A stretch of 39,820 nt of DNA from Cyanophora paradoxa CCMP329 (lineage: Eukaryota; Plantae; Glaucophyta): positions 1 through 39,820 of the forward strand of contig QPMI01000383.1 in the NCBI GenBank assembly GCA_004431415.1, read 5' to 3'. Both the position numbers and the translations under genes were made by a program. Shown here in pieces: positions 3,001-38,000 of the stretch. Position 1 is the stretch's first letter; each line of letters begins with the position of its first letter. The notes beneath the pieces were generated by a model. The model did no database searches and was not told where the DNA came from. It worked only from the letters and a program-made list of their open reading frames with translations.

Positions 3001-6000
3001 TGGAGCTGGTGCTGCTCCGCGAGCTCGTCGGCAAGATGTCGGGGGTGGAGCCGAGCGAGGACCTGCGGGACGACCAGGCGGACGCGCAGGCCGGCGGGGA
3101 GACGCTGCGGGCCGAGACGGCCATGAACCTCGTCAAGGCCAACTACAAGAAGTCGTGCACGAAGCTGCGGGACGTGCTCCTCGGCTCCGGGGCGGCCTTC
3201 CCGCTGCTGGCGCTCATCGGCCAGCAGCGCCGCGCCGTCGTCGAGCTCATGGGCGGCGACTCCGAGTTCCCCCTCAAGGCCCGCCCGCCCCCGTTCCCCT
3301 CCCTCCCCGCCCGGCCCCTCCGCCGAGCGCCGCGCAGATGGTGGGCGACTCGTTCGACAAGATCCACGAGACGCTCATCCAGTACGTCGAGTTCCTCCAG
3401 GTGCCCCCCAACCCCCGCTCCCAGAGAGCCCGGCGCGCCCTCGCGTGACCGCGCCGGCGGGCGGGGCGGGGCAGACGAACGTGCCGGCGGAGCAGTACGC
3501 GAAGCTGCTGCCGTCGATGCAGGAGCTCTGCGTCAAGTACCAGCTGGAGCCGGAGGTCGTCTGGCACATCGCCCGCCCCGCCCTCCCCTACCTCCCCGGC
3601 GAGGAGGGCGCCCCGGCCCCGGCCCCGGCCCCGGGCGCCCAGGAGCTCGTCCCCGCGCACGTCGTCCGCGCCATCCGCCACATGGCCCCCGTCCACGACG
3701 TGCGCCCCCGGCCCCCCGCCCCTCCCCGGCCCCGCTGGCCCCCGCCGATGCCGGGGGGGCAGGCGGTGGGCCGGAAGGTCTTCGCGGCGGAGCTGTACGC
3801 CGCCTTCTGGTCCCTCTCCCTCTACGACATATACGTGCCCAAGGCGCGCTACGAGGCGGAGATCGCCAAGTGCCGCGAGCAGCTGCGCGTCCTGGACGAC
3901 CCGCGCGAGCGCGAGAAGGACCGCACCGAGCTCGAGCGCTCCGACCGCAAGAAGAAGCGCGAGCGGGCCCAGGCGCGCCAGCACCCCACGCCGCGCCCTG
4001 TCCTGTTCCGCGCTGATCCTCCACCCTGGCAGGGCGTGCTGGAGAAGCTGGAGGCGGAGCTGGCGGCGCACGAGAAGCACCACGCCGCCGTCAAGGACAA
4101 GTTCGAGCGCGCCAAGGACACCTTCCTCCGTGCGGCCCCGGCCTTCGCGCCCGAGGGTAGCTTTAGCCCACTGACGGCCCGAGCAGCGCGCTACCACAAG
4201 GATTTCATCATGTCCTTCCTCCAGCTCTGCATCTTCCCCCGCTCCGCCTACTCCCTCCTCGACGCCTCCTACTGCATGAAGGCGCCCCCGGCCCCGCCCC
4301 GTCCCCTCCCCTGCCCTCTGAGCCGCGCCGCGCCGGGCCGCAGTTCGTGCTGCTGCTGCACTTCTCCTCGGCCAAGTGCTTCTCCACCCTCGCCTTCTTC
4401 CAGAAGGCGCGCCGCCCGCCCCAGCTCCCCCGCCGGCCCCGCCCCGGCCGCCTGACGCCGGGGGGCGGGCAGAGCATCTCGGTGATGCGGGACCACATCT
4501 TCTCCTGCACCGAGAAGGAGGCCTCCCGCGTCGGTGCCCCGCCCCTTGCCTCGCCTTCTGCGCTCCGTCGCCCCGCGCCGACACACGCGCCGCCTCAGGC
4601 AAGTTCATGGCGGAGCTCATCGGGGTGTGGCAGCAGTGGACGGCGAACCAGGCGGCCTTCGACAAGTCCTGCGCCGCCTACCCGGGCTTCTCCACCAACT
4701 TCGGGGACCTCTCCGCCAAGCGCGCCTCGTACAACCAGTTCCAGGGCGTCGTCGACAAGTGGTACGGCAAGCTCGTCGACGCCTTCAAGAGCCTCCTCGA
4801 GAGCAAGGAGTTCATGGAGCGCCGCAACGCCCTCCTCATCCTCTCCCGGGCCGCCCCGCCCTGCCGCCCCCGCCGCCCCGCCCGCGGGCGCCGGCTCGCG
4901 CTGAGCCGCCCCTCGGCGCGCAGCTGGCGCAGGCGAAGATCTTCCCGCCGGTGCGGCGGCCCGGCATGGAGAAGGCCGCCCGCGAGATCGAGGCCCTCGT
5001 CTCCAAGTGCCCCGCCCCCGCCCCCGCCCCGCCCCGCCGGCCGCCGACCCCGCGCCGCAGGATGAAGGAGGAGGAGACGCGCGAGGACATCAAGGCCCTC
5101 GCCGCCCGGTGCGCCTTGCCGTGCGCGGGGAGGGGCCGCGCTGAGGCCGCCCCGCCCCCGCAGCTACCACGGCATGCTCGTCGCCATGCTCCCCAAGAAG
5201 CCGGCCGCCCCGGGGGCGCCGCCGCCGCCGCCGCCGGCCCCGCCGCCGCGCCTCGCCCCGCCCCGCCGCCGGTCCCGCGCCGGCCCCCGCTGCGGTCCGC
5301 TTTCCCCTGGCGCCGCAAGGAGCGAGCTGACAGCGCGACAGGCGAAGCCGCGCGCTGAGGCACCCGTGGGGCCTCGGGAGCTGGCGGGGCGGGAGCCGGC
5401 GCGCCGCCTCCGGCACGCGGGCCCGGCGGCGCCGTCGCCGCTGCGGCGGCCGCCGCGGCCGCGGACGCGCGGGGGCGACCAAGCCGGGGCAGGCCCAGCC
5501 GCCGCCGCCGGCGCGCGACGGGCCGCGGCAGCGGGAGGGCCAGAGCCTGAACCCCAACGCGCCCGACTTCGTGCCCAGCGGGGCCCCGCGGTGCGCGCTG
5601 CTGCCGGTTCGGGCGCCGCTGCGTCGCTCACGGACCGCGTAGGAGGGGAAGGGCGCCCCGCCGGAGCCGAGGCGCGCCCGCGCCGGCCGACCGCAACAGG
5701 GACGGAGACCGCGATCCGCCCGCCCCGCAGGCCGCCCCGGCCGCCGCCGAGCGCGGCGGACGGCGGAGGGCGGCGCCGCCGCGGGCGCCGCTGCCTCCGG
5801 CCCTCGGGCGCGCTGCCGCCGCGGGGGGGCAGCGGGAGGCGGCGGCGGCGAAGGAGGGGGCGGGGACGGGGCGGCCACGGCGGCGCCCGCTCGGGAGGCG
5901 CGCGAGGCGCGGGACGGGAAGCGCGGCGGCGCCGACGCCGAGCCGGTCGACGACAATGGTCCCGGTACCCCCCCCCCCCCCCGCCCCGCCTCCCGCCCGC

Positions 6001-7170
6001 CTCCAGAGGGCGCGCGCTGACGGTCGGGCCGGCAGCCTCGAAGCGGCGGCGGGCGGCCGGCTCGGCGCCGAGCTCGCAGCCGGTGTCGGGACGGCGACGC
6101 CCTCGGACGACCGCGGCGCCCGCCCCGGCCCGCTCCATCTCGCCCCCGCCCGGCCGCCCCCCGGCGCCCTCCCCCGGCTGCGGCCCGCAACGAGCGCGAG
6201 CGGGAGCGCGAGCGGGAGCGGGAGCGCGAGCGCGAGCGCGAGCGGGAACGGGACGCGAAGGACAAGGGCGGCGAGCGGAAGCGGGAGCGCGAGGAGCCGC
6301 CGCCGCCGCCCGAGGCGGCGCCCAAGCGCCGCCGGGACGAGGAGGAGGGTGCGCGCGCCCCGCCCCGCCCGCCCGGGCCCCGCGCGCTCGCTCGGCGGGG
6401 CGGCTGAGGGGCGGCCCGGGCAGAGGCGGCGGCGCGGAGGGCGCGGGCGTCGAGCCGCGAGGTCTCCCGCGAGGCCCGCGACCGCGACCGCGACCGCGAG
6501 CGCGACAAGGAGCGGGAGCGGGAGCGCGAGAAGGAGGAGCGGGAGAAGCGGGAGCGGGAGAAGGAGGAGGAGCGGGAGCGGGAGGCCAAGGGGCGCGACA
6601 AGGAGCGCCCCGGGCGGGAGGAGAAGAAGGAGGAGAAGAAGGAGGAGGGGCGGGAGGAGAAGGCGGCCGCCCCGCCCCGCCGCGTCGTCAAGATCGCCAA
6701 GGGCTCCTCCCACAAGGACGCCCCCGCCGCCTCGGGGCCCGCCCCGCCCCCGGAGGCCGCCCCCTCCACCTCCGTCCCCACCCCGCCCTCGGCCTCGGGG
6801 CGCGCCCCGTCCCCGCGCGAGGGCCGCGACAAGGAGAAGGAGAAGGAGCGGGACGGCCGCGAGAAGGACCGCAAGGAGGAGAAGGGTGCGCCCCCGCCCC
6901 ACGCCCGCTTCGGTGCGCGCCTCACGGCCCGCGCGCAGCGGAGCGCAAGCGGGACAAGGAGGAGAAGAAGGAGAAGGAGAAGGACAAGGACGACGAGGAG
7001 AAGAAGGAGAAGCGGCGCGACAAGGAGAAGGAGAAGGACAAGGAGAAGGAGTGCGTCGCCGCCGCGCCCCCGGGCGCCCCGCCGCCGCCCGCCGCCGCCC
7101 GCCGCCCCTCACCCCGTCCCCGCCCGCGCGCCGCAGGCCGTCATCCGAGAAGCGGCGGCGCGGCAAGTGA
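87..7170 (+). CDS. THOC2: THO complex subunit 2 (Tho2/THOC2), multi-exon, with several apparent 1-nt deletions
   Basis: Spliced peptides match conserved THOC2 segments: KMLYTQQKYNLMREETEGYSKLVTEVN (864-965), QSLIGYFDLD(P)NRVADIVLDAYE (1057-1130), LANPLPTLEVALDQLQAYDNLIQMFVDVFKQFTPLQFD, FWSLSLYDIYVPKARYEAEI, FLQLCIFPRSAYSLLDASYC, LLESKEFMERRNALLILS, REDIKALA. It ends in a long K/E/R/D-rich tail with TGA at 7168-7170. Start codon and some exon borders are approximate. Confidence 0.93.
6190..7050 (+). repeat. Coding low-complexity charged repeats (RE/RD/KE) in the THOC2 C-terminal tail
   Basis: Runs of GAGCGG/GAGCGC, GACCGC and GAGAAG/GACAAG hexamers. Confidence 0.8.
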
Positions 7171-7293
7171 GCGGGCGGCGCGGAGCTCGAGCCCCGCGCA
7201 CTCGCGCACCCCTCGCCGCTCGCACCGCGCCAGCGGAGCCGAGTGTCGAATTGTCCAAAAAGACTAGAGTACACGCGCGCTGGGGCCGGGGGG

Positions 7294-10200
7294 CTAGACG
7301 AAGATGTCGGACCAGGAGCGGGCGACGGGGCGGTCCTCGCGCAGCTCGAAGCGCCACTCGCCGTCCGCACCGCGCGCCCGCGCGAAGAGGTCCCCCGACG
7401 AGGCCGTCCCCAGCGCCGGCGAGCGGGCCCAGCCCGCCCCGGCCGCTGCGTCGCCCGCTGCGTCGGCGAGCCGGCGCCGGGGCCGGGCCCCCGGCTCGGG
7501 CTGGACGGCTGGCCGGGCGCGTGCCCCTGGGAGAGGTCCGCGGAGGAGAGGGGCTGCCAGGCGCGGGGCCGGGCGATGGGAGGCGGGCGACGCGGGGGCG
7601 GGCGGGGCGAGGGGCGGCGGGGCACGTCGGCCCCGGAGCTCTCCAGGCCGGACTCGCTGCTGCTGCCCTCCTCGCCGTCCTCGTCGTCCGAGCGCAGCCG
7701 GTGCTTCTCGGGGAGAGGGCCGGAAGGCCTCCGCCAGGGCCGACACCCGCGCCCGGCCCTCCTCCTCCCGGTCCCCCGCTCCCCCGCCGCCCGGGCCCCC
7801 CCGCCACGCTCCCCCGCCGCAGCGCGGACGCGCTCCCCGGCCTCGAAGCGGCGGCGCTCCCGGGCCGCGAGGCGGACGCGCTCCCTGGGCGGGATGCGGC
7901 AGCGCTGTGGGGCCGGAGCGGCGAGGCGCTCTGGGGCCGGGACGGGGAGGAGGCGGCGGCGCTCGGGGGCCGGGCGGCGGCATCGGCTCCCCGACGCGCG
8001 CCCGCACGCCGCCCGCAGCGTCGCCAGGCACCGCGGCTGCCGGGGGCGGGGCGTCAGGGGCGGCGCGGGCGGGCCGGGGCGCGGGGCGCGGGCCTGGTTG
8101 CTGTTGAAGAACTCGGCGGTGCGGGCCTCCACCCCGGGGTCCCCCTTGGCGTCGAACTGCGCGGGGCCCCCGCCTCACGCGCCGGAAAGACGGCTCGAGC
8201 GGGCTCTGTCGGGCGGGGGCGGGCCTGGTAGACGAGGAAGATGTCGACGGTCTGCGCGCGCGTCGCGATGCCGTAGCCCATGCGCAGCACCTGCCGCCGG
8301 GGGGCGGTGGGAGGGGGGCCGGGGGCGGGCGGCCGGGGCGGGGCGGGCCTCGGAGCGGATGGAGCCGTCCTGCGGGCGCGGGCACTTCTCGTGCTGGACG
8401 CTCTGGCAGGCGACGATCCAGCCGGCGCGGGTGCGCTGGCGGGACCAGAGGAGGCAGAGGTCGCGCGGGGCGGGGTCCAGCTCCGGGGAGACGACCCGCA
8501 GGTGCTCCACCTGCCGCGGGGCCCCCGAGGGTCGCGGGGCGCGCGGGCCGGCCCCGGGCCCCGTGCGCCGGGCTCCCGGACCTTGACGTCGGGGCTGATC
8601 GTTTCGTCGATGACCGCCCCGCCCAGCAGCATCCGGTCCCACCTGCCCGGCGTCGGGGCGGGGCGGGCGGGGCGCGGGGGGCGCTGGGCGGGGGGCCCGC
8701 ACGAGAGGCGGGAGGGGAGGTGCCAGACGAGGGCCGCCACGAGGTCGGGGTCCGCCCCCCGCACCGCCACGTGCGCCCGCACGATCTCCGGCTCTGCCCC
8801 CCGCCCCCCCGCCCCGCCTCGCCAACCACGCCCGCCCCGGCGGGGAAGAGCGGAGGAAGGAGAGGGCGGGCACCGCCGGGGAGCTCGGGGCGGCGCCAGA
8901 AGGTGCGGACGTGGCCGCGCCAGGAGGAGAAGCGCCAGCCGTGCTCGAGCAGCAGCAGCCGCTGCACCTCCGTCCGGATCGAGCGCGCCGCGCCAAGGTA
9001 GTACGACTGCGCCCCCGGGGGCCCCCCGCCCCGCCGTCAGGCCGGCCCGCCCCCCGCTGGCCCGGGCGGCGGGGCGGGCCACGGGTGCGTAGAAGAAGCC
9101 GCCGTGGGCGGTGGTGCGCCGCTGCGCCTCCTCCGCCTCCCGCTGCATCTCCTGCAGCTCCTGCGAGGGGAGGGTTCAGAGGCGCCAAGGGGGCGGGGCG
9201 CTCGCGCGCGCGCTCGCTCGCCTGGGTGGTGACGCGGCGCTTGCGGCAGAACCAGGCGAGGGCCCTGCGCCCCCGGGTCGCCGCGGGCGGGCGGGCGGGC
9301 GAGTGACGGGCGCCGGCGGGGCGCACGAGTCGCCCTGCGGCACGTCGATCTTGACCATCGTCCCAGAGAGCGTCCACTGCGGCGGGGCTCGCGCGGGGCG
9401 GGGCGGCGGCGGGGGGGGGGGCGGCGGACGGCGTGGAGGGCGGGCCCCGGGGAGAGGGGGAACTTGAGGCCGACGAGGAAGAGGCCCTCCTCCGTCAGCC
9501 CCTCGAACGTCAGCTGCCCCGGCGTCACGGGCCGGGCCGGGCCGGGGCGGGCCGGGGGGGGGCAGGGGGGGGCGCCTGGGAGCCGAAGGCGGTGCGGAAG
9601 CGGAGCTCGACGAGGGTCCGCACGTGCGCGTAGTCCCGCTTCAGGAAGCCCAGCGGGGCGCCCACCACCTGGCCCCTCGCCCTCGCCCCTCAGCGCCCGC
9701 CCCCCCGCCGCCCCCGCCCCGCCCCGGCGCGGCCGCGCGCCTTCAGCACGTCGTCTTGGCTCCAGATGCGCTCCGACGGGAGCTCTGCCGCCCCTTAAGC
9801 GTGAGCCGCCGCCCTCGCGGCGTGGCGGGGCGGGGCGGGGCGGGGCGCGCCGACGAAGCGGACGGGGGCGGGCTTGGTGGGGGACCCCGGGGCGGCCCGC
9901 CTCCCCGCCTGCGCAGCGCGGCTCGCGATCGGCAATGGGGCGGGGGAGGGACGGGGCGGGGCGGACCTGGACGGCGCCGAAGATGGCGACGCAGAGCTTA
10001 AACTCCTCGACGGGGGCCCGCCCCGTGCGGCTCTCGAAGGCGCTCGGGTCGGAGCGCTGCGCGGCGGTGGGCCAGCGGCGGCGGCGGCGGAGAGCTGAGC
10101 GCGGCTCAGCTCGGAAGGGGCACCTTGGAGTGGATGGCGACCTTGGAGCGGACGTGGTCGTACTGAACGCGCGTCTGCTGGAGCGGCAGGTCCGCGAGCA

Positions 10201-11048: not shown

Positions 11049-14000
11049 TCAGCGCTGGCCCGCCCCAGCGGCGGGCGAGAGGAGCTCCTGGACGCCCGCC
11101 TCCCCGCCCTCGTCCTCCTCCCCGCCGGCCTTCTGCGCCTTGGCCCGCGCCTGCGCCGGCGGCCGCGGGGCGGCGGGCCCCTCGTCCCCGCTGCTCAGGT
11201 CCGGCTCCTCGCTCGAGTCGCCCCCCTCGGGCCCCGCCGGCGCCGCCCCCCGCGCCTGCTCCTTCTCCGCCCTCCGGCGCGCGCGGCGGGCCTCGCGCTC
11301 GGCGCGCCGCTCGGCCCTGCGCGCCCGCTTGGCCTCCTTCTCCCTGCGCCGCGCCTCGGCCCGCTCCTCCTCCAGCCGCCGCTTCCGCTCCTCCCGCGGC
11401 GTCCTGAACACGTCCACCTCCTCCTCCGCCTTCGCCCGCGCCGCCGGCGCCGGAGCCGCCGCCGCAGCCGCCGCCGCCGGTGCCGGAGCCGCCGCCGGCT
11501 TGGGGCGGGCGGGCGGGCATGGGGGCGGGGGCGGCGGCTCCTTCGGGGGCGGCATGGCGTTCTGGATGACGGTGGCGGGGCGGACGGCGGCGCGGGAGCC
11601 GGCGCTGTTGCCGGGCTCGACGCTCTTGATCTGCGCTGCCTGCTCGCGGAGGACCTCCGAGGGCAGCGTGCGCGCCACCAGCGCCTCGCTCCACGGGCCC
11701 TTCCCCTTCTCGTTCTCCGCGCACACCGCCACCCTGCCGCCCGGATCGCCGCGGCCGCGGCGGCAGCGCGAGGGCGAGGCGGGGGGGCACCGGTAGGGGG
11801 CGTCGGGGAGGAGGTAGGGGATCTCGACGCTGCCGGCGAGCCCGAGCGGCATCTCCACCGGCGCCTGCGCGCCGTCCATCCGCCCACCTGCGGCCCCGCC
11901 CCCGCTCGCCGCCCCTCGCCACCGGCCGGGGCGGGGCCGCCCGGACGGGCGCGGGCGCGCCTGCACGTGGAAGCCGATGACGTCGGCGCCACCGTTGAAG
12001 GCCGGCGGGTCGAAGCGGACGGCGAGGGAGTCGCTCGAGGCGCGCTCCAGCCGCACCTCCCGCGGCGCCCCGGCCGCGCTGCGCCCCCTCAGCCCCGCCC
12101 GCCCCGCCGGCGCAAGGCGCGGGCGGAGGGCACACCGGCCTCGGTGCGGAGGGCGGCGGTGGCGGCGGCGCCCTCCCCGCTGCTGTTGAAGGCCGCCACG
12201 CGGAAGCTGTACTCCGTCCCTGCGCCCCGCCCCGTCGCCGGCCGGCCCCGCGCGCCGCGCTGGCGGCGGGGCGCACCGGGCCGCAGCTGGGCGACCTCGT
12301 AGAGGAGGGCGGCGCCCTGTAGACCTGCGCGCCCGTCAGAGGGCCCCGGGGCGCGGGGCGGGGCGGGGGCAGGCGGGCCTCGCGCTCGGCCTCGAGGGGG
12401 GAGCCCTGGGCCCGCGGGCGTAGAGGACGAAGCCGTCGGTGACGCCGCCGGCGCGCGCCCCGGGCGCCCACGTCACCGCGATGGACGTCGCGGAGCGCGA
12501 CGCCGCCCCGAGGCCCGCCGGCTTCGCCGGCAGCGCTGCGTGCCCCGGGTCAGCTCAGCCGGGCGGGGCGCGCGGGGGGGCTGGCAGATGGAGGGCGCGC
12601 GCCTCCCTTGGTGGAGTGCTTGACGGAGGGGGAGGGCCCCGACTCGCCGGCGGCGTTCGTCGCCGTCACGTGGAACTCGTACGCGGCGAAGGGGTCCAGC
12701 GTCCCCTTCCACGCCGGCTTCCGCACCGAGGCAATCGCCCCGCCGTTCGCGTACACCTGCCCCGCCCCCTCGCTCCGGGAGCCGGGAGAGGGGAGGGGGC
12801 GGCCGGGGCGGACCGTGTAGGAGGTTATCTTGGAGCCGACGGTGACGGCGGGGGGCGCCCAGGAGAGGGAGACCCCCGAGTGGGAGAGGGGCACCACCGA
12901 GGGCGGCCCGGGCGGCGGCGGCGCTGCGCACGCGTCAGCGGGCGCCGCGCGCAGACCGCGCCCGGCGGCGGCGCACGGCAGTCGGTGACGATGCGCGCGG
13001 ACGCGACCTGCGCGGGGGCGGCTCGTGGGGCAGGGGGCGGGGCGAGCGGGGAGGGGGGGCGCACGGGGCTGGCGCCGGCCTGGTTATAAGCGACGAGGCG
13101 GAACTCGTAGGCGGTGCCGGGCTCGAGGCCGGCGACGGCGAAGCTCGTCTCGGGCCCGCGGTAGAGCTCCTCGTCCCCGCGCGAGAGGGCGAAGCCGTCC
13201 ACGCGCCCCGCCCCGCGCCCGCTCGCCGTCCACGAGAGCGTCACCGACGCCGTCCCCACGCTCAGCGCCGCCGGCCCGTTCGGCTTCGCCGGCGGGGCCC
13301 CCGAGGTGACGACCTTGAGCGGGGCGCTCCGTGGCCCCTCGCCGGCCCCGTTCGAGGCGGCCACGGCGAACTCGTACGCGGTGAAGGGCTCGAGCGTCCC
13401 CCGCCACTTGGGCTTGGGGCACGACGCCACCGCCTGCCCGTTCTGGTACAGCTGCGGGGCCGGCTCAGCGCGGGCGGGGTGGGGCGGGCCGGGGCGCGCG
13501 GGGGCGGGGCGGGGGCGGCGCGCCGTGTAGGCTGCGATCTTGGAGGCGCCGGAGGGCATCGCGAGGGGTGCCCACGTCAGCGCGACGGTCGCCCCCTGCA
13601 TCGTGCCCAACGCCGGCGCCGCCGGCGCCGGAGGCACTGCGCCCGAGGGGCGTCGGCGGGGCCGGCGGGGCGGAGCGCGGCGCGCGCACGCGAGTCGGTG
13701 AAGGCGACGCAGTCGGGGCTACGGGTGCCGGCGGCGTCAGAGGGCGCTCAGCAGACGGGAGAGGAGGAGCGGGCCTGTAGTTGGACATGCCGGCGGCGTT
13801 GACGGCCGCAAGTCGGAAGGCGTAGCGCGTCCCCGGGTGCAACTCCTTGACCTGCGCCCCGCCCCGTGGGCGGCCGGCGGCGCAGGCGGAGGGAGGGCGG
13901 CGGCGCTGCGGCGCGCCTCGCAGGTGGTGGTCGCCCCGCCGACGGCGATGACCTTGCCGGACTGGTCGTGGAGGAAGTACTGCTGGATGGGGAAGCCCCC

Positions 14001-19820: not shown

Positions 19821-22743
19821 CTACGCGATGAAAACCTTGCCCCCTACCCCGATCGGCAGGATGGACTGGGGCGAGTCGCGGGGGCCGGGGAGAGCGGAGG
19901 GGATGGGCCCGTCGAGGGCGGTCGGGGGCCGCGGGGGGAGGATGGAGGGGGCGGGGCCGACGGGGGCGAGCGCCATGGCCATGGGGGGCTGGAGCGGGGC
20001 GGAGTGGTAGAGGGGGTGCCCGAGGGGCGGGCCGTACGCCGGGACGGCGGCGAAGGCGAACTCGAAGGGGGGCGCCCCCGGCGGCAGCAGCGGCGCCTCG
20101 TGCATGCCGCGCAGCGCCAGCATCCCGTGCGGCGCCGGCGAGTGCCCCGCCGGCAGGTGCACCCCCATCCCCTGCTGCTGCTGCTGCGCCGGCGGCGGGG
20201 GCGGGAGGTGCTGCGGGGGCGCCGGCGGGAGCGGGGGCGGGGCGGCCGGGGGCGGGCTGGGGCCGCGCCCGCGAAGGGGAGCTCGGGCGGGGGCGGGCTG
20301 GGCCGCGGCCGGCGTCGCGGGCGGCATCGCGGAGGCTGACGGCGCGGCCGATGCCGGGGCCCGGGGTGACGGGCCGCTGCGCCCCGGGCCCGCCTCCACG
20401 GCGTCCTCCCCGACCCCTGTCGGGCCCTCGTCCGTCGCCCGCCCGTCCGCGAACCGCACCGCCGCCCGGCTACCCGGCCGCGGCCGCTCCTCCTCCGCCT
20501 CCGGCACCGGCGCCGGCGGCGGCGAGGCGCGCGGCAGGTTGCAGGAGCGGCGGCGGGAGAGGCCGCCGGGGCCGGCGGGGGCGGTGAGGGAGGCGCGGGC
20601 GAGGGAGGCGGCGAGGGGCGAGGCGGGGCGGGGGGGCGCAGGGGACGCGGAAGAGCTCGGCGGCCTCCTCGGGGGCGGGTGCGCGGGCGGCTTCGGCGGG
20701 GCGGAGCCAGGGGGCGGCGACGGGGGCGAGGAGGCGGGCGGAGGCGAAGGCGAGGGGCAGGCCGACGAGGTCCTCGAGGAAGTAGGCGCCGTCGAGGGCG
20801 CGCAGGGAGGCGGCGAGCTGCGGGCGCGCCGCGTCGTCGAAGTGGAGCGGGAGGAGGGCGCGGAGGGCCCCGACGTGGACCGTCACCTCCTGCTGCGTCG
20901 GCGACACCAGCCGCACCGCCTCGTACACGAACTGCCCCGCCCCGAGGGTGAGGCCCGGGCCGCGCGGCGCCCCGCGGCGCGGCGAGCGGGGCGCACGTGG
21001 GGCACGGCGAGGTTGAAGTTCAGGCGGCAGCGCTCGATCGCCTCGCGCAGCGCGCCCTTGAGGCTCGTCCCGTGCCTGCGCGCGCCGGCCGGCGTCGGCC
21101 GCCGCCCGGCGCGGGGCGGGGCGGGGCGGGGCTGCGCACGAGAAGAAGAGGCGTCTGCGCTCCTCGGGCTCGCCGGCGGGGTGTGCAGGAAGGGCTCCCG
21201 GGCCCCGGGGGCGCGCCCGGCCTCCTCGCGGCGGGCGGCGGCGGCGGGGACGACGCCGGCGCGCACGAGCAGGTCGAAGCGCGCCTCGACGAGCCCCTCG
21301 AAGTCCGCGCTACGGAAGACGCTCTGGCCGGCCGCCTCCCAGTTGAAGGCGAGGCGGGCGTCCCCGGCCTCGCAGAAGGTCGCCCGCTCGGGGAGGACGC
21401 GCCCCGGCAGCAGCCGCGCGAAGGGCTCCGCGTCGCGCCCCACCAGCACCGACGCCTCGTCCGCCACGAAGGGCCCCGGGGCGCCCTCCTCCTGGAGGGG
21501 GCCCTGGCCGCCCGGCGCCGCCGCCCCGGGCGCACGCTCCCGCAGCACCACGTAGATCTGCCGGCCAGGGGCGTCAGGGCCGGCCCGTGCCCGGGGCGCG
21601 GGAGGGCGGCGGGCGCGCCTCCTTGTAGTAGTCGTCGACGAGGCCCGAGTTGAAGAGGGCGAACGCGAGCCGCATCTCCGCGTCGTAGCTGCGGCGGCCG
21701 GCAGGTCGGCGTGCGCGCCCCGGCGCCGGGGCGCGCGGAGGGCGCGCGCACCCGTAGGCGACGCGGCCCTGCTCGACGACGCGGATGAAGATTCCGGCGA
21801 GGTAGCACTGCAGCAGGAACGGGTCCCACGTCTCCTCCGCCGTCCTCGCCCGCAGCGCCAGCTCGTGCCTGCCGCAGGCAGGGCTCGCCCGGCCCCGCTA
21901 CCGCCCCCGCGGCCGCGGCGCCGCGCGCACCAGAAACCCGGCGCTATCTCCGCGTAGCGCGTCAGAGGGTTCGCCGCCGGGTCCCTCGGCACCACAACAC
22001 ACGAGCTCGCTCCCTGCGCCACAAAATTCAGCGTCCGCGTCCAAAGCGGGCCGCCGGCCGGCGCGGACCTCGGAGCCCGAGATGCCCTCAAGGAAGGATA
22101 TGGGCAGGGTCTCTGGGCGGACAGGCCCGGCCGGAGCAAGCGGGGTGGTGATCCCGGACAGTGAACAAGATGAGGACGCCGGTGACTGGCTCCCGTGGGC
22201 GCTGCAGGCTGAGCTGTTCGAGCTGCTGACGACGGAGTGCTGAGGGGGCGTAGCGACCCCGCGCTCGTGCTCCCAGCTGCCCCGCCGACCGAATCCGGGT
22301 GCACTGGAATGAGAGCGCCCCGAGTATGGCGGCGGGGTGCCCAAGTCCACGCGCCCGAAGTGGTGCTTGTCGAGTGGCGGGGAAGGCATGCGGCGCACCG
22401 CGGCCGACGGCGACGACGGGGTGGCCGGCGACGATGCATCGGGACTGTAAGACGAATCGTACGCATCGCGAATGCCCAATGTCCCAGAGCTCGGGGTCCG
22501 CGCGTAATCAATCCTTGAGGTTGGCGTGGCGGGCGTGCTCGGAACGCTGCCGCTGCCCGCTAAGAATCTCGTCGGGCTTACATACGAAGTCGGTGACGGA
22601 GCCGGTGTTTTTATCTCCAGGCCGCCTGGTGCTGGACCGTGCTCTGTTGGCGCCGGCGCGGGAGGATTTGAACTGGCGGACGACTGCTCCCGTTCTATCC
22701 TGAACTTCCGCGCGTTGTTGGATGTTGGAGTGGACTCCGCCAT
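19821..22743 (-). CDS. DUF3825-like domain protein with S/P-rich N-terminus and Pro-rich C-terminus
   Basis: Spliced core (~21960-20700): EETWDPFLLQCYLAGIFIRVVEQGRV..ALFNSGLVDDYYKEIY..LPERATF..AIERCRLNFNLAVPH..ALLPL..AFASARLLAPVAAPWL. This follows my recollection of the DUF3825 motif order (E.W, L..YL..F.R..EQ, FNTGL..E.IY, LP.RA.Y/F, NY..AVP, LLLPL, AY..ARL....WL). Confidence 0.7.
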
Positions 22744-29942: not shown

Positions 29943-30591
29943 CAGCACATCTGCGGTCTAGCAGCCTGTAATCTTGCCCCCCCTCTTTCTCCGCGCCTCA
30001 GTTGCACACAACGACCGCGCAAAAGACCATCAGATTTCATTTTTGCTTTACAGTTCGTTTAGGCAGTCCTCCCCGTGTGCTGGGAACCACATGCCTCCCT
30101 TTTCACGATCTCAGCGATGTACATTCTCGTTCCCGATGTTGACTCGATCCTAGAAGCTGCTCCCGACTCGAAGAGACGGAGCCTACATATTTCTATCGAC
30201 GTCAAACCCTTGTCCGCGCTGCGCGTGCAGCGGCGCGCGGCCGGGCCCCATGTGTACATCTTACTTCAATTTCAATTGCGAAAACCTTACCCTGCGCATG
30301 CTTGTCTATGATGGCGTCGCCACCGGCGCCGGCTCCAGAATCCACGCAGGGTCATGCTAGGCCTAGGTAGTTTATTTAATCTGGTGTTAACGTGTATATT
30401 CCTAAATTTGAAATAGAGAATTCAATGATTCGAAGTGCGCAATTCACGTTGAATGCAAGTCCCTGCTGCCTCGATCCCGCTCTGCCGCCATAGCCCGCGG
30501 CACGCATCACTTCCGCGTTTTGTTTTCGTATTCACAGATCGAAGGGGGGCCGGCCGAACGGCCCGGCCCCTCCGTGGCGGGGGGGTACGGC

Positions 30592-31933
30592 TCAGGCGTC
30601 GACGGGGAGCTCGCCGGAGTCGGCGACGGTGACGGTCTTGGAGGGGGTGCCGGACTCGGAGCCGATCTTCTCGACGCGGGCGACGACGTCCATGCCCTCG
30701 ATGACCTTGCCGAAGACCACTGCGCCCGCCCGCCCGCTCCCGTCGGCGCCCGCCGCCCCCGGCGCGAGCGCGGGGGCGCACCGTGGCGCCCGTCCAGCCA
30801 CGAGGTGACGACGGTGGTGATGAAGAACTGCGGCGCGTGAGCGCGGCGAGGCCGGGCCTGAGGCGGCGCGGCCTCCTCGCCGCCCGCACCTGGGAGCCGT
30901 TAGTGTCGGGGCCGGCGTTGGCCATGGACAGGTAGCCGGCGGCCTTGTGCTTGATCTTGAAGTCTGCGGGCGGGTCAGCGGCGCGGCCGCGCGGCAATCC
31001 GGGCACGGCGCGGCCAAACGCACTCTGCGCGGAACGCGGCTCAGCAAGCAGACGGCATGTCCCGAGTCACGGGGGCGGGCTCACCTCATCCTCGAAGCGA
31101 GCGCCGTAGATCGACTCGCCGCCGCGGCCGTCGCCAAGGGTGAAGTCTGCAGCAGGGTTCAGGCCGACATACATGCGCGGCGGCCTTCCGGACACACGCA
31201 CCACCGCCCTGGATCACTACACGACGCACGCGGTGGCCGCATGGTCAGGAAAGCATGCGATGATCGGGGCGACGAAAAGCGCACTGAAGTTGGGGATAAT
31301 ACTGCGCAAGGGACGTTCAGCGATCTAGTCGCAGCTCTGAAATCGACAGGACGTGGCGTACCGGTGGAACTTGGAGCCCTTGTAGTGGAGGGGCTTGCCC
31401 TGTGCTTACGTCAGCAACCCGCTACCGTAGCTCGCGGCTGGCAGCCGCCTGGGACTCTAGGACGGAATGCTTGCAAACTAAGGCGAACCGAGGTGCCAGT
31501 GCCCTTCTCGCCGGTGCAGAGGGCGCGGAAGTTCTCTGCAGGCCCGTGGTCACGCGTCGCCTGTGCCATTCGGGCGCGTGCGACGTACCGACGGTCTTGG
31601 GGACAGTGTTGCCGAAAAGACCCATCACCTAGACGGCATCGAACGCGTTCGGACGGCACAGCTGCGCGACAGAACGGGCCGAACGCACAATGCGGCCCGC
31701 CTTCTGGCCATCGATTTCCACGTCGAAGAAGACCTTGTGGGTGATCTTCTCGAGGTCGCCGCCGCCGCTCTTCTTGGCCTTCTTCGCAATCGGTCCGCGC
31801 TCATAGCGCAGGTGGCGGGTCCCGCAAGCACCTTCTTCGCCTCGGCCTGGAACGAGACGAAGCTGGACAAGAAGAGGACGCCGACGATAATCCCGAGGAG
31901 GCCGAGCCTCTTGCGGCTGCAGTCGAAGGTCAT
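30592..31933 (-). CDS. PPIB: Cyclophilin-type peptidyl-prolyl isomerase with signal peptide (cyclophilin B / plant CYP20-1-like), 12 exons
   Basis: Complete reconstruction: signal peptide [19 protein letters not shown]; [121 protein letters not shown]. Confidence 0.97.
31024..31024 (-). other. Predicted single-nucleotide exon (A) in the cyclophilin gene
   Basis: Minus strand reads GAT GAG|gtgagc..gctgag..cgcgcag|A|gtgcgt..gctgac..cgcag|AC TTC AAG. Flanking introns 31084-31025 and 31023-30964 are each 60 nt. The base restores the frame and the conserved DENF motif. Confidence 0.85.
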
Positions 31934-32027
31934 TCTTGCTGCAACGACGGTGTATCCCGGTCGGACACAGGGTACGCGAACACGAGACGACGTCGACGAG
32001 CTGGCGCTGCGGCGAGCCACGTCTGCG
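31934..32027. promoter_or_regulatory. Very short bidirectional promoter region (cyclophilin / Apd1-like)
   Basis: Only 94 bp separate the two divergent predicted ATGs (31933 and 32028). Contains GACGTCGAC at 31989-31997. Confidence 0.6.
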
Positions 32028-35020: not shown

Positions 35021-38000
35021 ATGCAGTCTAGCCAAAGCGGAACCTCTCGCACGCACGATGCCGATGTCGATATGTACGCGAGACAGGCGGTCGAAACCGT
35101 CCGGCAGTTCATCCTCGCGCGCGGGGGAAAGTTGGAAATCGTCCGCGCCCCCTTCGTGCGCGCGCATACCTTCCCCTCGGCCGCTCACCCCGCTCGCTCG
35201 GTCGCAGACTAAGCTCGGCGGCGCACTCGCGAACGCGACGCACCAGATGAAGCAGGCGGTGAAGACGAAGTACGGCGGCCTAAAGCAGTTGTGCGCCCGA
35301 GAGCTTCGCCTGGAGCACGGAGTCGTGTACGTCGATGGAGGCCGAGGCGCCTTCGAGGACCGCAGGCAGCCGCCGGCTCCGCCGCGGCTCGAGGAGGCCG
35401 CCGCGGGGCCGTCGAGCGGGGCCGGGGGTCAGCAGGCGGGCGGGGGCGAGGGCGAGGAGGGCGGGGAGACGCTGGGCTGGACGATCGACCGGACGGGGGA
35501 CTTCGATCGCGCGGAGCTGAGCGACGAGCTGGCGCGGCGCCAGAGCGAGGCCCTCATCTACTCGATCTTCGGGGAGGACGAGGAGGGCGAGGAGGAGGGG
35601 GGCACGGCAGCGGTGCCCGCGGCGCCCGCGGCGTCCCCGTCGCCTCTCGGGGCCGGGGACGCGGGGGCCGCGGACGAGTACGAGGACGCGACGGACGGGG
35701 CGAGCAGCGTAGGGGCCGCCTCCGGGTGCGCCCCCCGCCCCCGCCCCCGCCCCCGCGCTGCTCCGAGCGACCTTCGGCGCGGCAGCGCTGTGGAGATCGT
35801 GGAAGCGGACGAGGGGGAGGAGGAGGAGGAGGAGGCGGGGGAGGCCGAGGCCGAGGCGCGCCCCGCGCTGGCCGGCGCGCGGGGCCGGCCGGCTGACGGG
35901 GCGGCAGGGCGGGGAGGAAGAGCGGGCGCGGGCGATGCTCGCGCGCATCGTCCGCGAGGCCCAGGCGCGCGCCTCGGCCGCGCAGGCCGAAGCCGAGCCG
36001 GAGGCGGAGGCGGAGCCCGGGGCGGAGCCGGAGCCGGAGCCGGAGGCGGAGCCGGAGCCGGAGCCGGAGCCGGAGGCGGAGCCGGAGCCAGAGCTGGAGG
36101 CTGAGGCGGAGCCGGAGGCTGAGGCTGAGGTCAGGGGGGAGGCTGCAGGAGAGGAGGAGGAGCGGCCGCCTGGCGTGGAGGCGGAGGCGCGCGCGGGGCG
36201 GGCGCACGCGGGAGCGGCCGCGGAGGAGGAGGAGGAGGAGGAGGCCCCACCCGGGGCAGTGGTGGAGGAGCGGGCCCCGCCGGCTGTGCAGGCAGCGGCC
36301 CCAGAAGCGGCTGTGGCGGCGGCGGCGGCGGCTGGCCAGAAGCGGAAGGCGGCGGAGGCAGAGGAGGAGGAGGAGGAGAGGGGGCGGGAAGATGCACCGC
36401 AGGCGAAGCGGGCGCGCGGCGAGGCGGGGCGGGGCGGGGCCGGGCCGGGGCCGGGGCCGAGCAGCGTGGCGCGGTGGTCGCCGCCGTCGGCGGCGCGCGA
36501 GGCCGAGCACCCGCGCGCCGGCCCCAGCCGCCACGAGCACGGGCACGGCCACGGGCAGGGCAGGGGCAGGGCCCGCCCAGCCTCACCACCCTCCTAGCCC
36601 GCTTCGGGTGCGCCTCATCCCCCGCCCCGCCCGCCCCGCACCGGCCCTCGAGCGAGGGCGGGCAGGGCGATCGTGGCGTCGGACGCGGCGGCGCGGGCGT
36701 GGCGCCCCGCGGGGCCCCGCCGCGGCCGCCGAGGCGTACGTCACCTCCCTCGCCGCCGCCCTCTCCGTCGTCAACCAGGTGCCCCCGCCCGCGCCCCTCG
36801 GCGCCCTCGGCGCCCTCCTGGCCCGACGCGGCGGCGGCGCCCCCGCAGCTCGTCTCCTCGCCGACGACCGCCGAGGACGTCTTCGCTCTCCTCTTCCGCC
36901 GCCTGCCCCCGGAGGCGAGCGAGGCGGCGCCCGGCAAGGCGCGCGCGAGGCAGCGCCCTGACCGGCGCGGCGCGGGGCGCAGGCGGCGGCGATGCTCGGG
37001 GCGACGGCTGCGCCTGGCTCGAGCGCATCATCCTCAGCGCCGACGGGCGAGCCCCCGCCCGACCTCCCCGGCCCCCGCGTCGAGAGGCCGATCGCCGCGC
37101 AGGGCCTTCGAGGAGTGCCGGACGGGGGACGGGCGGCGCGGCTTCGTGCTCCGCCCGGGGCCCGTCGGCGCGCGCCTCGCCGCCCGCGCCCTTACTGCCC
37201 TCGCGCCCTCCACGTGCGCCCCGCCCCGCCCCGCCCCGCCCCGGCCCCCGCCCCGCCAAGCTGAGGCCGAGCGGCGCAGCGGAGTCGCCCTCCGGCCCTT
37301 CCCCGAGCAGGCAAACACGACCCCTCCGTGCCCCCTCGCCTCGCCTCGCCTTGGCGGGGCGCTCAACCCCGGCGTGTGCAGATGGCGGGGCTGGTGGAGC
37401 GGGCGCGGGAGCTGCAGGGGCGCTCGGGGGCCCTCCTCGCCGCCCCCGAGTCCCTCGAGTCCATCAGGGCCCGCCCCACTCCCCGCTCCCCGCTCCCCGC
37501 CCCCCGCGCCGATCGCCGGCGCCGGCCCCGCAGGAGGGGAACATCTTCGCGCGAGAGGCCTTCTCGCTCCTCGAGGACGCCTGCCGGTGCCCCCCGCCCC
37601 GCCCCCGCCTCCTGCGCTCCCTCCGCCGAGCCCTCGGGGGGCAGGGAGGTGTGCTACCACCGGGGCCCGACGGTGCCGCTGCACGACCTCGGTGCCTACC
37701 TCAAGTGGCTCGTCGCCTCCGGCACCATCTCCCCGCCCCTCCAGGCACGCAGCTTTGCTCTTTGCGGCTGTACCCCCGCAGCGGAAGGAAGACCGCACCC
37801 CCGCAGGGCCGCCTCGACCGCCTCTGGAAGCTCCGCAACACCGCCTCCCACGGCGAGGCCGTCCGTTCCCCCATCCCCCTTACCCCTTGCGGATCCCAAC
37901 CCCGTACCCCCCGCAGGTGCTCCTCCGGGCCGAGATCGGATTCGACGCCATCGCCGTCACGTGCGATCTCCTGCGGTACCCTTCCCCCCCCCCCCCCCCC

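Follow-up and report, generated by a model that had tools for sequence, protein, structure and literature searches.

In the long introns of Drosophila and of vertebrates there are zero-nucleotide recursive splice sites (ratchet points), at which an acceptor AG directly abuts a donor GT and nothing is kept in the mRNA. In the stwintrons of fungi, an inner intron interrupts the splice signal of an outer intron, with no exon base between the two. Exons of a single nucleotide are the closest described relatives of the case presented here. That of the APC11 gene of Arabidopsis thaliana (Guo and Liu 2015) was proven by constructs in which the A was changed to T, changed to G or deleted, and the model of its authors combines intron definition with a stepwise, recursive-like removal (PMC4674806). 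In Fusarium, a one-nucleotide exon is found in 20-24 genes of the CYP621A P450s and is confirmed by SRA reads, the clue to its presence being an intron more than twice the median of 56 nt in F. graminearum (PMC12940212), and the long-read annotation of Coprinopsis cinerea holds 13 exons of this size (PMC12230235). The Arabidopsis and Fusarium exons were both missed by gene predictors (PMC4674806, PMC12940212). The original prediction of such an exon at the locus studied here had called these exons very rare and known from plants; this holds for their rarity and for APC11, yet it was incomplete as it missed the fungal cases (PMC12940212, PMC12230235), and since fungi have them too, the present finding is less exceptional than it implied.

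The locus is a cyclophilin gene in a 39,820 nt stretch of DNA from the glaucophyte Cyanophora paradoxa CCMP329 (assembly GCA_004431415.1, contig QPMI01000383.1, positions 1 to 39,820), which is called the window throughout this work. The A at position 31024 of its coding strand (hereafter A31024) is, with a probability of about 0.9, a genuine one-nucleotide exon of this expressed gene. Just like the exon of APC11, it is one A between an AG and a GT inside a supposed single intron, is indispensable to the reading frame, and appears in cDNA whilst being contiguous with neither exon. The two cases differ in that the introns of APC11 are 333 and about 88 nt long, in a genome of longer introns, whereas here they are 60 and 60 nt long, in a very intron-dense gene. 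They also differ in gene and lineage, and in the kind of evidence, which is mutational for APC11 and one transcript contig for the cyclophilin exon. With Fusarium CYP621A and Coprinopsis it shares a genome of short introns, an AG-N-GT at the center of an apparent intron over twice as long as the norm, a base that completes the codon of a conserved motif, and confirmation by SRA reads; in those fungi the gene models were wrong at the site. In Fusarium CYP621A, however, the retained base is G, forms the second position of a Gly codon and is kept in 20-24 orthologues, whereas here it is an A, the first base of an Asn codon, in one gene.

The likeness to recursive splice sites lies in the closeness of acceptor AG to donor GT and in the predicted regeneration of a functional site after the first reaction. 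In contrast to them, A31024 is a base that stands between AG and GT and is retained; recursive sites subdivide introns of tens of kilobases, whilst here one coding base is kept between introns of 60 nt. Similarly, stwintrons resemble this locus in that what looks like one intron is in fact two, probably removed one after the other, but unlike them introns 8 and 9 of the cyclophilin gene each have complete signals (GT, branch-like motif and AG, all intact), with one base between them. Our literature search found no paper on a one-nucleotide exon in a glaucophyte, nor any that links Cyanophora with microexons.

The published genome of C. paradoxa, of about 100 Mb, has a GC content of 67.6%, 9.2 introns per gene and a mean intron of 86 bp (PMC6704402), and the window agrees with it in its GC content of 63-81% and its dense short introns. 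G+C reaches 78-81% at window positions 4001-10000, 12001-14000, 20001-22000 and 36001-38000, as against 63% in the cyclophilin region. The coding part of the gene (Table 1) consists of exons of 102, 90, 40, 47, 38, 17, 15, 62, 1, 74, 46 and 128 nt, adding up to 660 nt, and of introns of 53, 60, 53, 89, 60, 68, 55, 60, 60, 62 and 62 nt, all of them GT-AG and with 60 nt as the modal length. This 660 nt coding sequence stays in frame only when an additional base is included between exons 8 and 10. The transcript extends at least over 30560..31953 in the RNA contigs of sequencing run X17, where all 11 introns appear as joints.

Two further features of the gene are worth recording. Exons 6 and 7, of 17 and 15 nt, are parted by the 68 nt intron and are both in the X17 RNA contig, the shorter of them being left unplaced by the aligner, just as the A was. 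Intron 1 (31779-31831, minus strand) has two acceptors in tandem at its 3′ end, GCGAAGAAG/GCC; in the contig it is the downstream AAG acceptor that is used, as 53 nt and not 50 nt are skipped at the RNA joint. Being of the NAGNAG type, this acceptor could allow the protein to gain or lose one Lys.

Table 1. The cyclophilin gene around its one-nucleotide exon, with the sequence words that tell its splice products apart (positions are those of the window).
Feature	Position	Strand	Remarks
Cyclophilin gene, coding part	30592..31933	-	ATG at 31933, stop TGA at 30592-30594; 12 exons
Exon 6, 17 nt microexon	31285..31301	-	Pieces of RNA contig, with loose ends at 31302 and 31362
Exon 7, 15 nt microexon	31202..31216	-	14 unplaced RNA-contig letters, ACCGCCCTGGATCA, between 31147 and 31285
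Exon 8, 62 nt	31085..31146	-	Ends GATGAG; RNA contig record 7 on 31085-31147, 0 mismatches
Intron 8, 60 nt	31025..31084	-	GTGAGC...GCGCAG; missing from RNA contig
Branch-like motif CTGAG, intron 8	31040..31044	-	A at 31041, 16 nt from intron end; sequence motif only
Exon 9, one nucleotide	31024..31024	-	A on coding strand (T on +); first base of Asn codon AAC in FEDENF
Intron 9, 60 nt	30964..31023	-	GTGCGT...CCCGCAG; missing from RNA contig
Branch-like motif CTGAC, intron 9	30974..30978	-	A at 30975, 11 nt from intron end; sequence motif only
Exon 10, 74 nt	30890..30963	-	AC completes AAC, then 24 residues; RNA contig record 7, 0 mismatches
Junction word, A included			GATGAGAACTTCAAG
Junction word, A skipped			GATGAGACTTCAAG
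Intermediate word, intron 8 gone, intron 9 kept			GATGAGAGTGCGT
Intermediate word, intron 9 gone, intron 8 kept			CGCGCAGAACTTC

The protein starts with a hydrophobic, signal-like segment, which is followed by cyclophilin motifs, including WLDGRHVVFGKV. In homology searches against Pfam and PDB, done exon by exon, exon 12 matched the Pfam family PF00160 with an E-value of 2.3e-4 (21.8 bits against a cut-off of 21.7; profile positions 123-156) and exon 10 with one of 0.002 (profile positions 83-106), and it is by these exon-by-exon matches that the product belongs to the family; exon 8 alone and exon 2 alone, both too short, returned no Pfam family. Exons 8 and 10 match many cyclophilins in the PDB, with E-values of 1e-4 to 7e-7 (by phmmer in the case of exon 8), and the best of these matches, to B/C-type enzymes and to Cyp5 of C. 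elegans, fit an ER-type (cyclophilin B/C-like) peptidyl-prolyl isomerase, which is what the product seems to be, judging by its sequence. Several other contigs, in both the RNA and the DNA runs, match just the best conserved of the cyclophilin exons (30681-30932 and 31500-31536), with 90-95% likeness and other letters in between. The genome therefore has several paralogous cyclophilin genes, whose intron positions could serve to date introns 8 and 9.

Between the GAT GAG that ends exon 8 at 31085 and the AC TTC AAG that starts exon 10 at 30963 lie 121 nt (31084..30964), reading GTGAGC...GCGCAG/A/GTGCGT...CCCGCAG. The original prediction had all these coordinates right, and a direct join of the two exons does, as it claimed, lose one base from the frame. 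It was also fair in calling the interval twice the local norm (the other nine introns are 53-89 nt long, two of them exactly 60 nt) and accurate in placing A31024 at its exact midpoint, which divides it into 60 + 1 + 60, and in giving each half its own donor, branch-like motif (CTGAG and CTGAC, respectively) and CAG acceptor, GCAG being present in both. The interval contains 10 A's, of which A31024 alone stands between an AG and a GT. The branch-like motifs of introns 4, 5, 7 and 10 sit 10-16 nt from the intron end, and those of introns 8 and 9, at 16 and 11 nt, match this spacing. The A is thus flanked by canonical AG and GT, and on both sides by introns of workable length with complete signals.

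How many bases the gene lacks at this point can be read from solved structures. In nine of nine solved cyclophilins in the PDB, exactly one residue, the Asn of FEDENF, separates the stretches matched by the peptides of exons 8 and 10: residues 69-88 and 90-113 in human CypB (1cyn_A), 67-86 and 88-111 in CypA (1ak4_A), 70-89 and 91-114 in 1h0p_A, and likewise in six more chains. The gene therefore needs one codon there, and as the last two bases of this codon (AC) come from exon 10, one base is lacking. A31024 is needed both for the reading frame of the 660 nt coding sequence and for the residue conserved in the nine solved cyclophilins.

In principle, such an arrangement could arise by chance, and a second-order Markov null of the window was used to estimate how often. 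About 0.95 AG-N-GT sites with a fitting donor and acceptor are expected in the whole window, but for one given interval of 121 nt the expectation falls to 1.4e-3 for any base and to 2.8e-4 for an A. A scan of the window for [CT]AG-N(1-3)-GT[AG][CA]G, with donor and acceptor 45-95 nt away, found the site of A31024 alone, compared to about 2.8 expected under a Markov null for inserts of 1-3 nt, and no second candidate in the window. The scanned motif not being rare window-wide, it is by itself no evidence; what is rare is the coincidence of AG-A-GT with the very point where one base is lacking.

The transcript supplies this base. Six RNA-type runs contain 21-32% of the sampled words, as expected for a spliced transcript, and three of them (X15, X17 and X18), together with one DNA run (X3), were aligned as contigs to 30560-31960. 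Record 7 of X17, a contig of 255 nt with a word depth of 362, covers exons 11, 10 and 8 without a mismatch: its letters 24-69 are placed on 30782-30827, 70-143 on 30890-30963, and 145-207 on 31085-31147. Its letter 144 is the only one left unplaced between 30963 and 31085, and it is a T on the plus strand, that is, an A on the coding strand. The mature mRNA that had been predicted, GATGAG-A-ACTTCAAG, is therefore seen in a spliced contig, with a base that is contiguous in the genome with neither neighboring exon; this holds for one run and one assembled contig, in a run that was classed as RNA by a guess of its kind. In records 7 and 8 of X17, every other intron of the cyclophilin model is spliced out at GT-AG sites, from which it follows that X17 does hold spliced RNA. 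Word depth in X17 is zero over 30983-31076 and no contig with a retained intron was found in it, contigs being a form of data that hides minor isoforms and rare variants and cannot show splicing intermediates. From X15 and X18 came just the final exon and fragments of paralogues, and none of their contigs spans the junction of exons 8 and 10. Beyond 31953, record 8 of X17 runs on for 28 further letters, a second copy of the exon 6/exon 5 junction of this mRNA; the extension has probably arisen from a loop in the k-mer graph or as a chimera rather than in the alga.

The main alternative foreseen by the original prediction was an assembly deletion, and, more broadly, either an assembly error or a strain difference could mean that the extra A belongs beside one of the flanking exons, with a single intron of about 121 nt and a coincidental AG-A-GT. 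In its favor, the RNA and DNA runs used come from different studies, and the gene has one intron of 89 nt, which means that lengths above 60 nt are tolerated. Against it, record 14 of the DNA run X3 (2024), a Logan contig of 3827 nt built from raw reads, spans 30560-31960 with 0 differences and 0 gaps, and thus does not differ from the window anywhere in the gene. All the sampled words (100%) are also contained in 14 DNA-type runs from 13 studies, which are not fully independent, as the assembly itself may have been built from some of them. With the same reservation, there is no extra base in the genomic sequence beside either flanking exon, and the X3 contigs include no other contig on the cyclophilin exons, hence no retrocopy or close paralogue as a source of the A. 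These data contradict an assembly deletion, which is very unlikely. Since, in addition, the exons of the RNA match the window with 0 mismatches, and the chance of AG-A-GT with fitting partners in the interval is about 3e-4, a strain difference or assembly error as a whole is left with a very small probability.

It could also be that the junction in X17 is itself an artefact of k-mer contig building, by an error or a chimera of paralogues, and that in the true mRNA the frame is broken or intron 9 is still present. The junction is shown by one contig only, the same runs contain several paralogous cyclophilin contigs of 90-95% likeness, and retention of intron 9 would stay open in frame (1 + 60 + 2 = 63 nt, without a stop). 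Retention of this kind would add 20 residues to the FEDENF loop without truncating the protein; it is rejected by the lack of depth and of any contig over the intron in X17. Given a word depth of 362, the absence of mismatches over the 74 and 63 nt that flank the junction, and the fact that the A is the exact base restoring a codon conserved in all the cyclophilins compared, we consider an artefact even less probable than a strain difference or assembly error. The least probable of the alternatives is that one intron is cut at shifted or non-canonical sites, or that a base is edited, the removal being of 120 nt or of a 117 nt GC-AG intron. The latter does have a GC dinucleotide to start from, 4 nt into the interval, and would maintain the frame by keeping GTGA and giving E-V-N-F; it would, however, insert four letters where the RNA contig has one. 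A splice site shifted by one base would add a G, both edge bases of the interval (31084 and 30964) being G, and not the A that is seen, and it would demand TG or CA splice sites. Nor do we know of any G-to-A editing at splice junctions. No single contiguous removal of genomic sequence can yield the observed mRNA, and with these alternatives excluded, the removal of two introns around A31024 remains.

The reading we favor is that two independent introns, each 60 nt long and of the U2 type with GT-AG ends, are spliced out, and that the A left between them opens the Asn codon of FEDENF. Each 60 nt intron may be recognized as one unit, that is, by intron definition, like those in the rest of this short-intron gene, whose introns of 53-89 nt and exons of down to 15 nt suggest that splice sites are paired across introns and not across exons. 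The two introns would be removed one after the other and not together, since the -3 to +6 stretch of the intron 9 donor, to which U1 pairs, includes the acceptor AG of intron 8, which argues against simultaneous engagement. Whichever intron leaves first, the A would then be joined to a normal exon and an ordinary splice site would form anew, GAGA/GTGCGT in one case and GCGCAG/AAC in the other. The context of the intron 9 donor, AGA/GTGCGT, is the same before and after the removal of intron 8. If a splice site is regenerated after the first reaction, removal has to be stepwise, and the site of A31024 could be said to act as a recursive splice site does, except that one base is kept. The same mechanism was put forward for APC11 by its authors (PMC4674806). 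That intron 8 is removed first is a guess, made on the grounds that it is transcribed first.

As to the origin of the two introns, a recent tandem duplication was considered and rejected, as their alignment score of 33 is that of shuffled sequences (32.3 +/- 5.5, p 0.46). They may stem from two separate intron gains one base apart, or from a migration of splice sites that shrank an older small exon. A search of the whole window against Rfam at gathering thresholds gave no match, and hence no known RNA in introns 8 or 9.

Exon 9 of the cyclophilin gene is the first one-nucleotide exon that we could find for a glaucophyte, and it lies in a highly expressed housekeeping gene. Exons of this size, documented in flowering plants and fungi, are thereby extended to an alga of a third, deep-branching lineage, which supports the view that exon sequence is wholly dispensable to an intron-defining spliceosome. 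Since this gene is small, abundant and easy to assay, and since the introns flanking the A are only 60 nt each, it offers a compact natural substrate for asking in which order two abutting introns are removed, and in what way the same six bases are shared by U1 and the factors of the 3′ splice site.

The finding also bears on genome annotation. Gene predictors and most spliced aligners cannot place an exon of one nucleotide (the aligner used in this work left A31024 unplaced), and the models of genes that carry one are left with a frameshift, are cut short or are labelled pseudogenes. As a gene of C. paradoxa has about nine introns (PMC6704402), many models may be affected. One may go further and speculate, tentatively and with the odds somewhat against it, that the spliceosome works here without any lower limit to exon length, that exons of 0-3 nt number dozens or more, also in highly expressed housekeeping genes, and that gene models are systematically wrong at these places. 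The value of A31024 would rise if a genome-wide survey showed such exons to be common, and if there is indeed no limit to exon length, this would be the richest natural system for studying how splice sites are paired without an exon and in which order abutting introns of 60 nt are removed.
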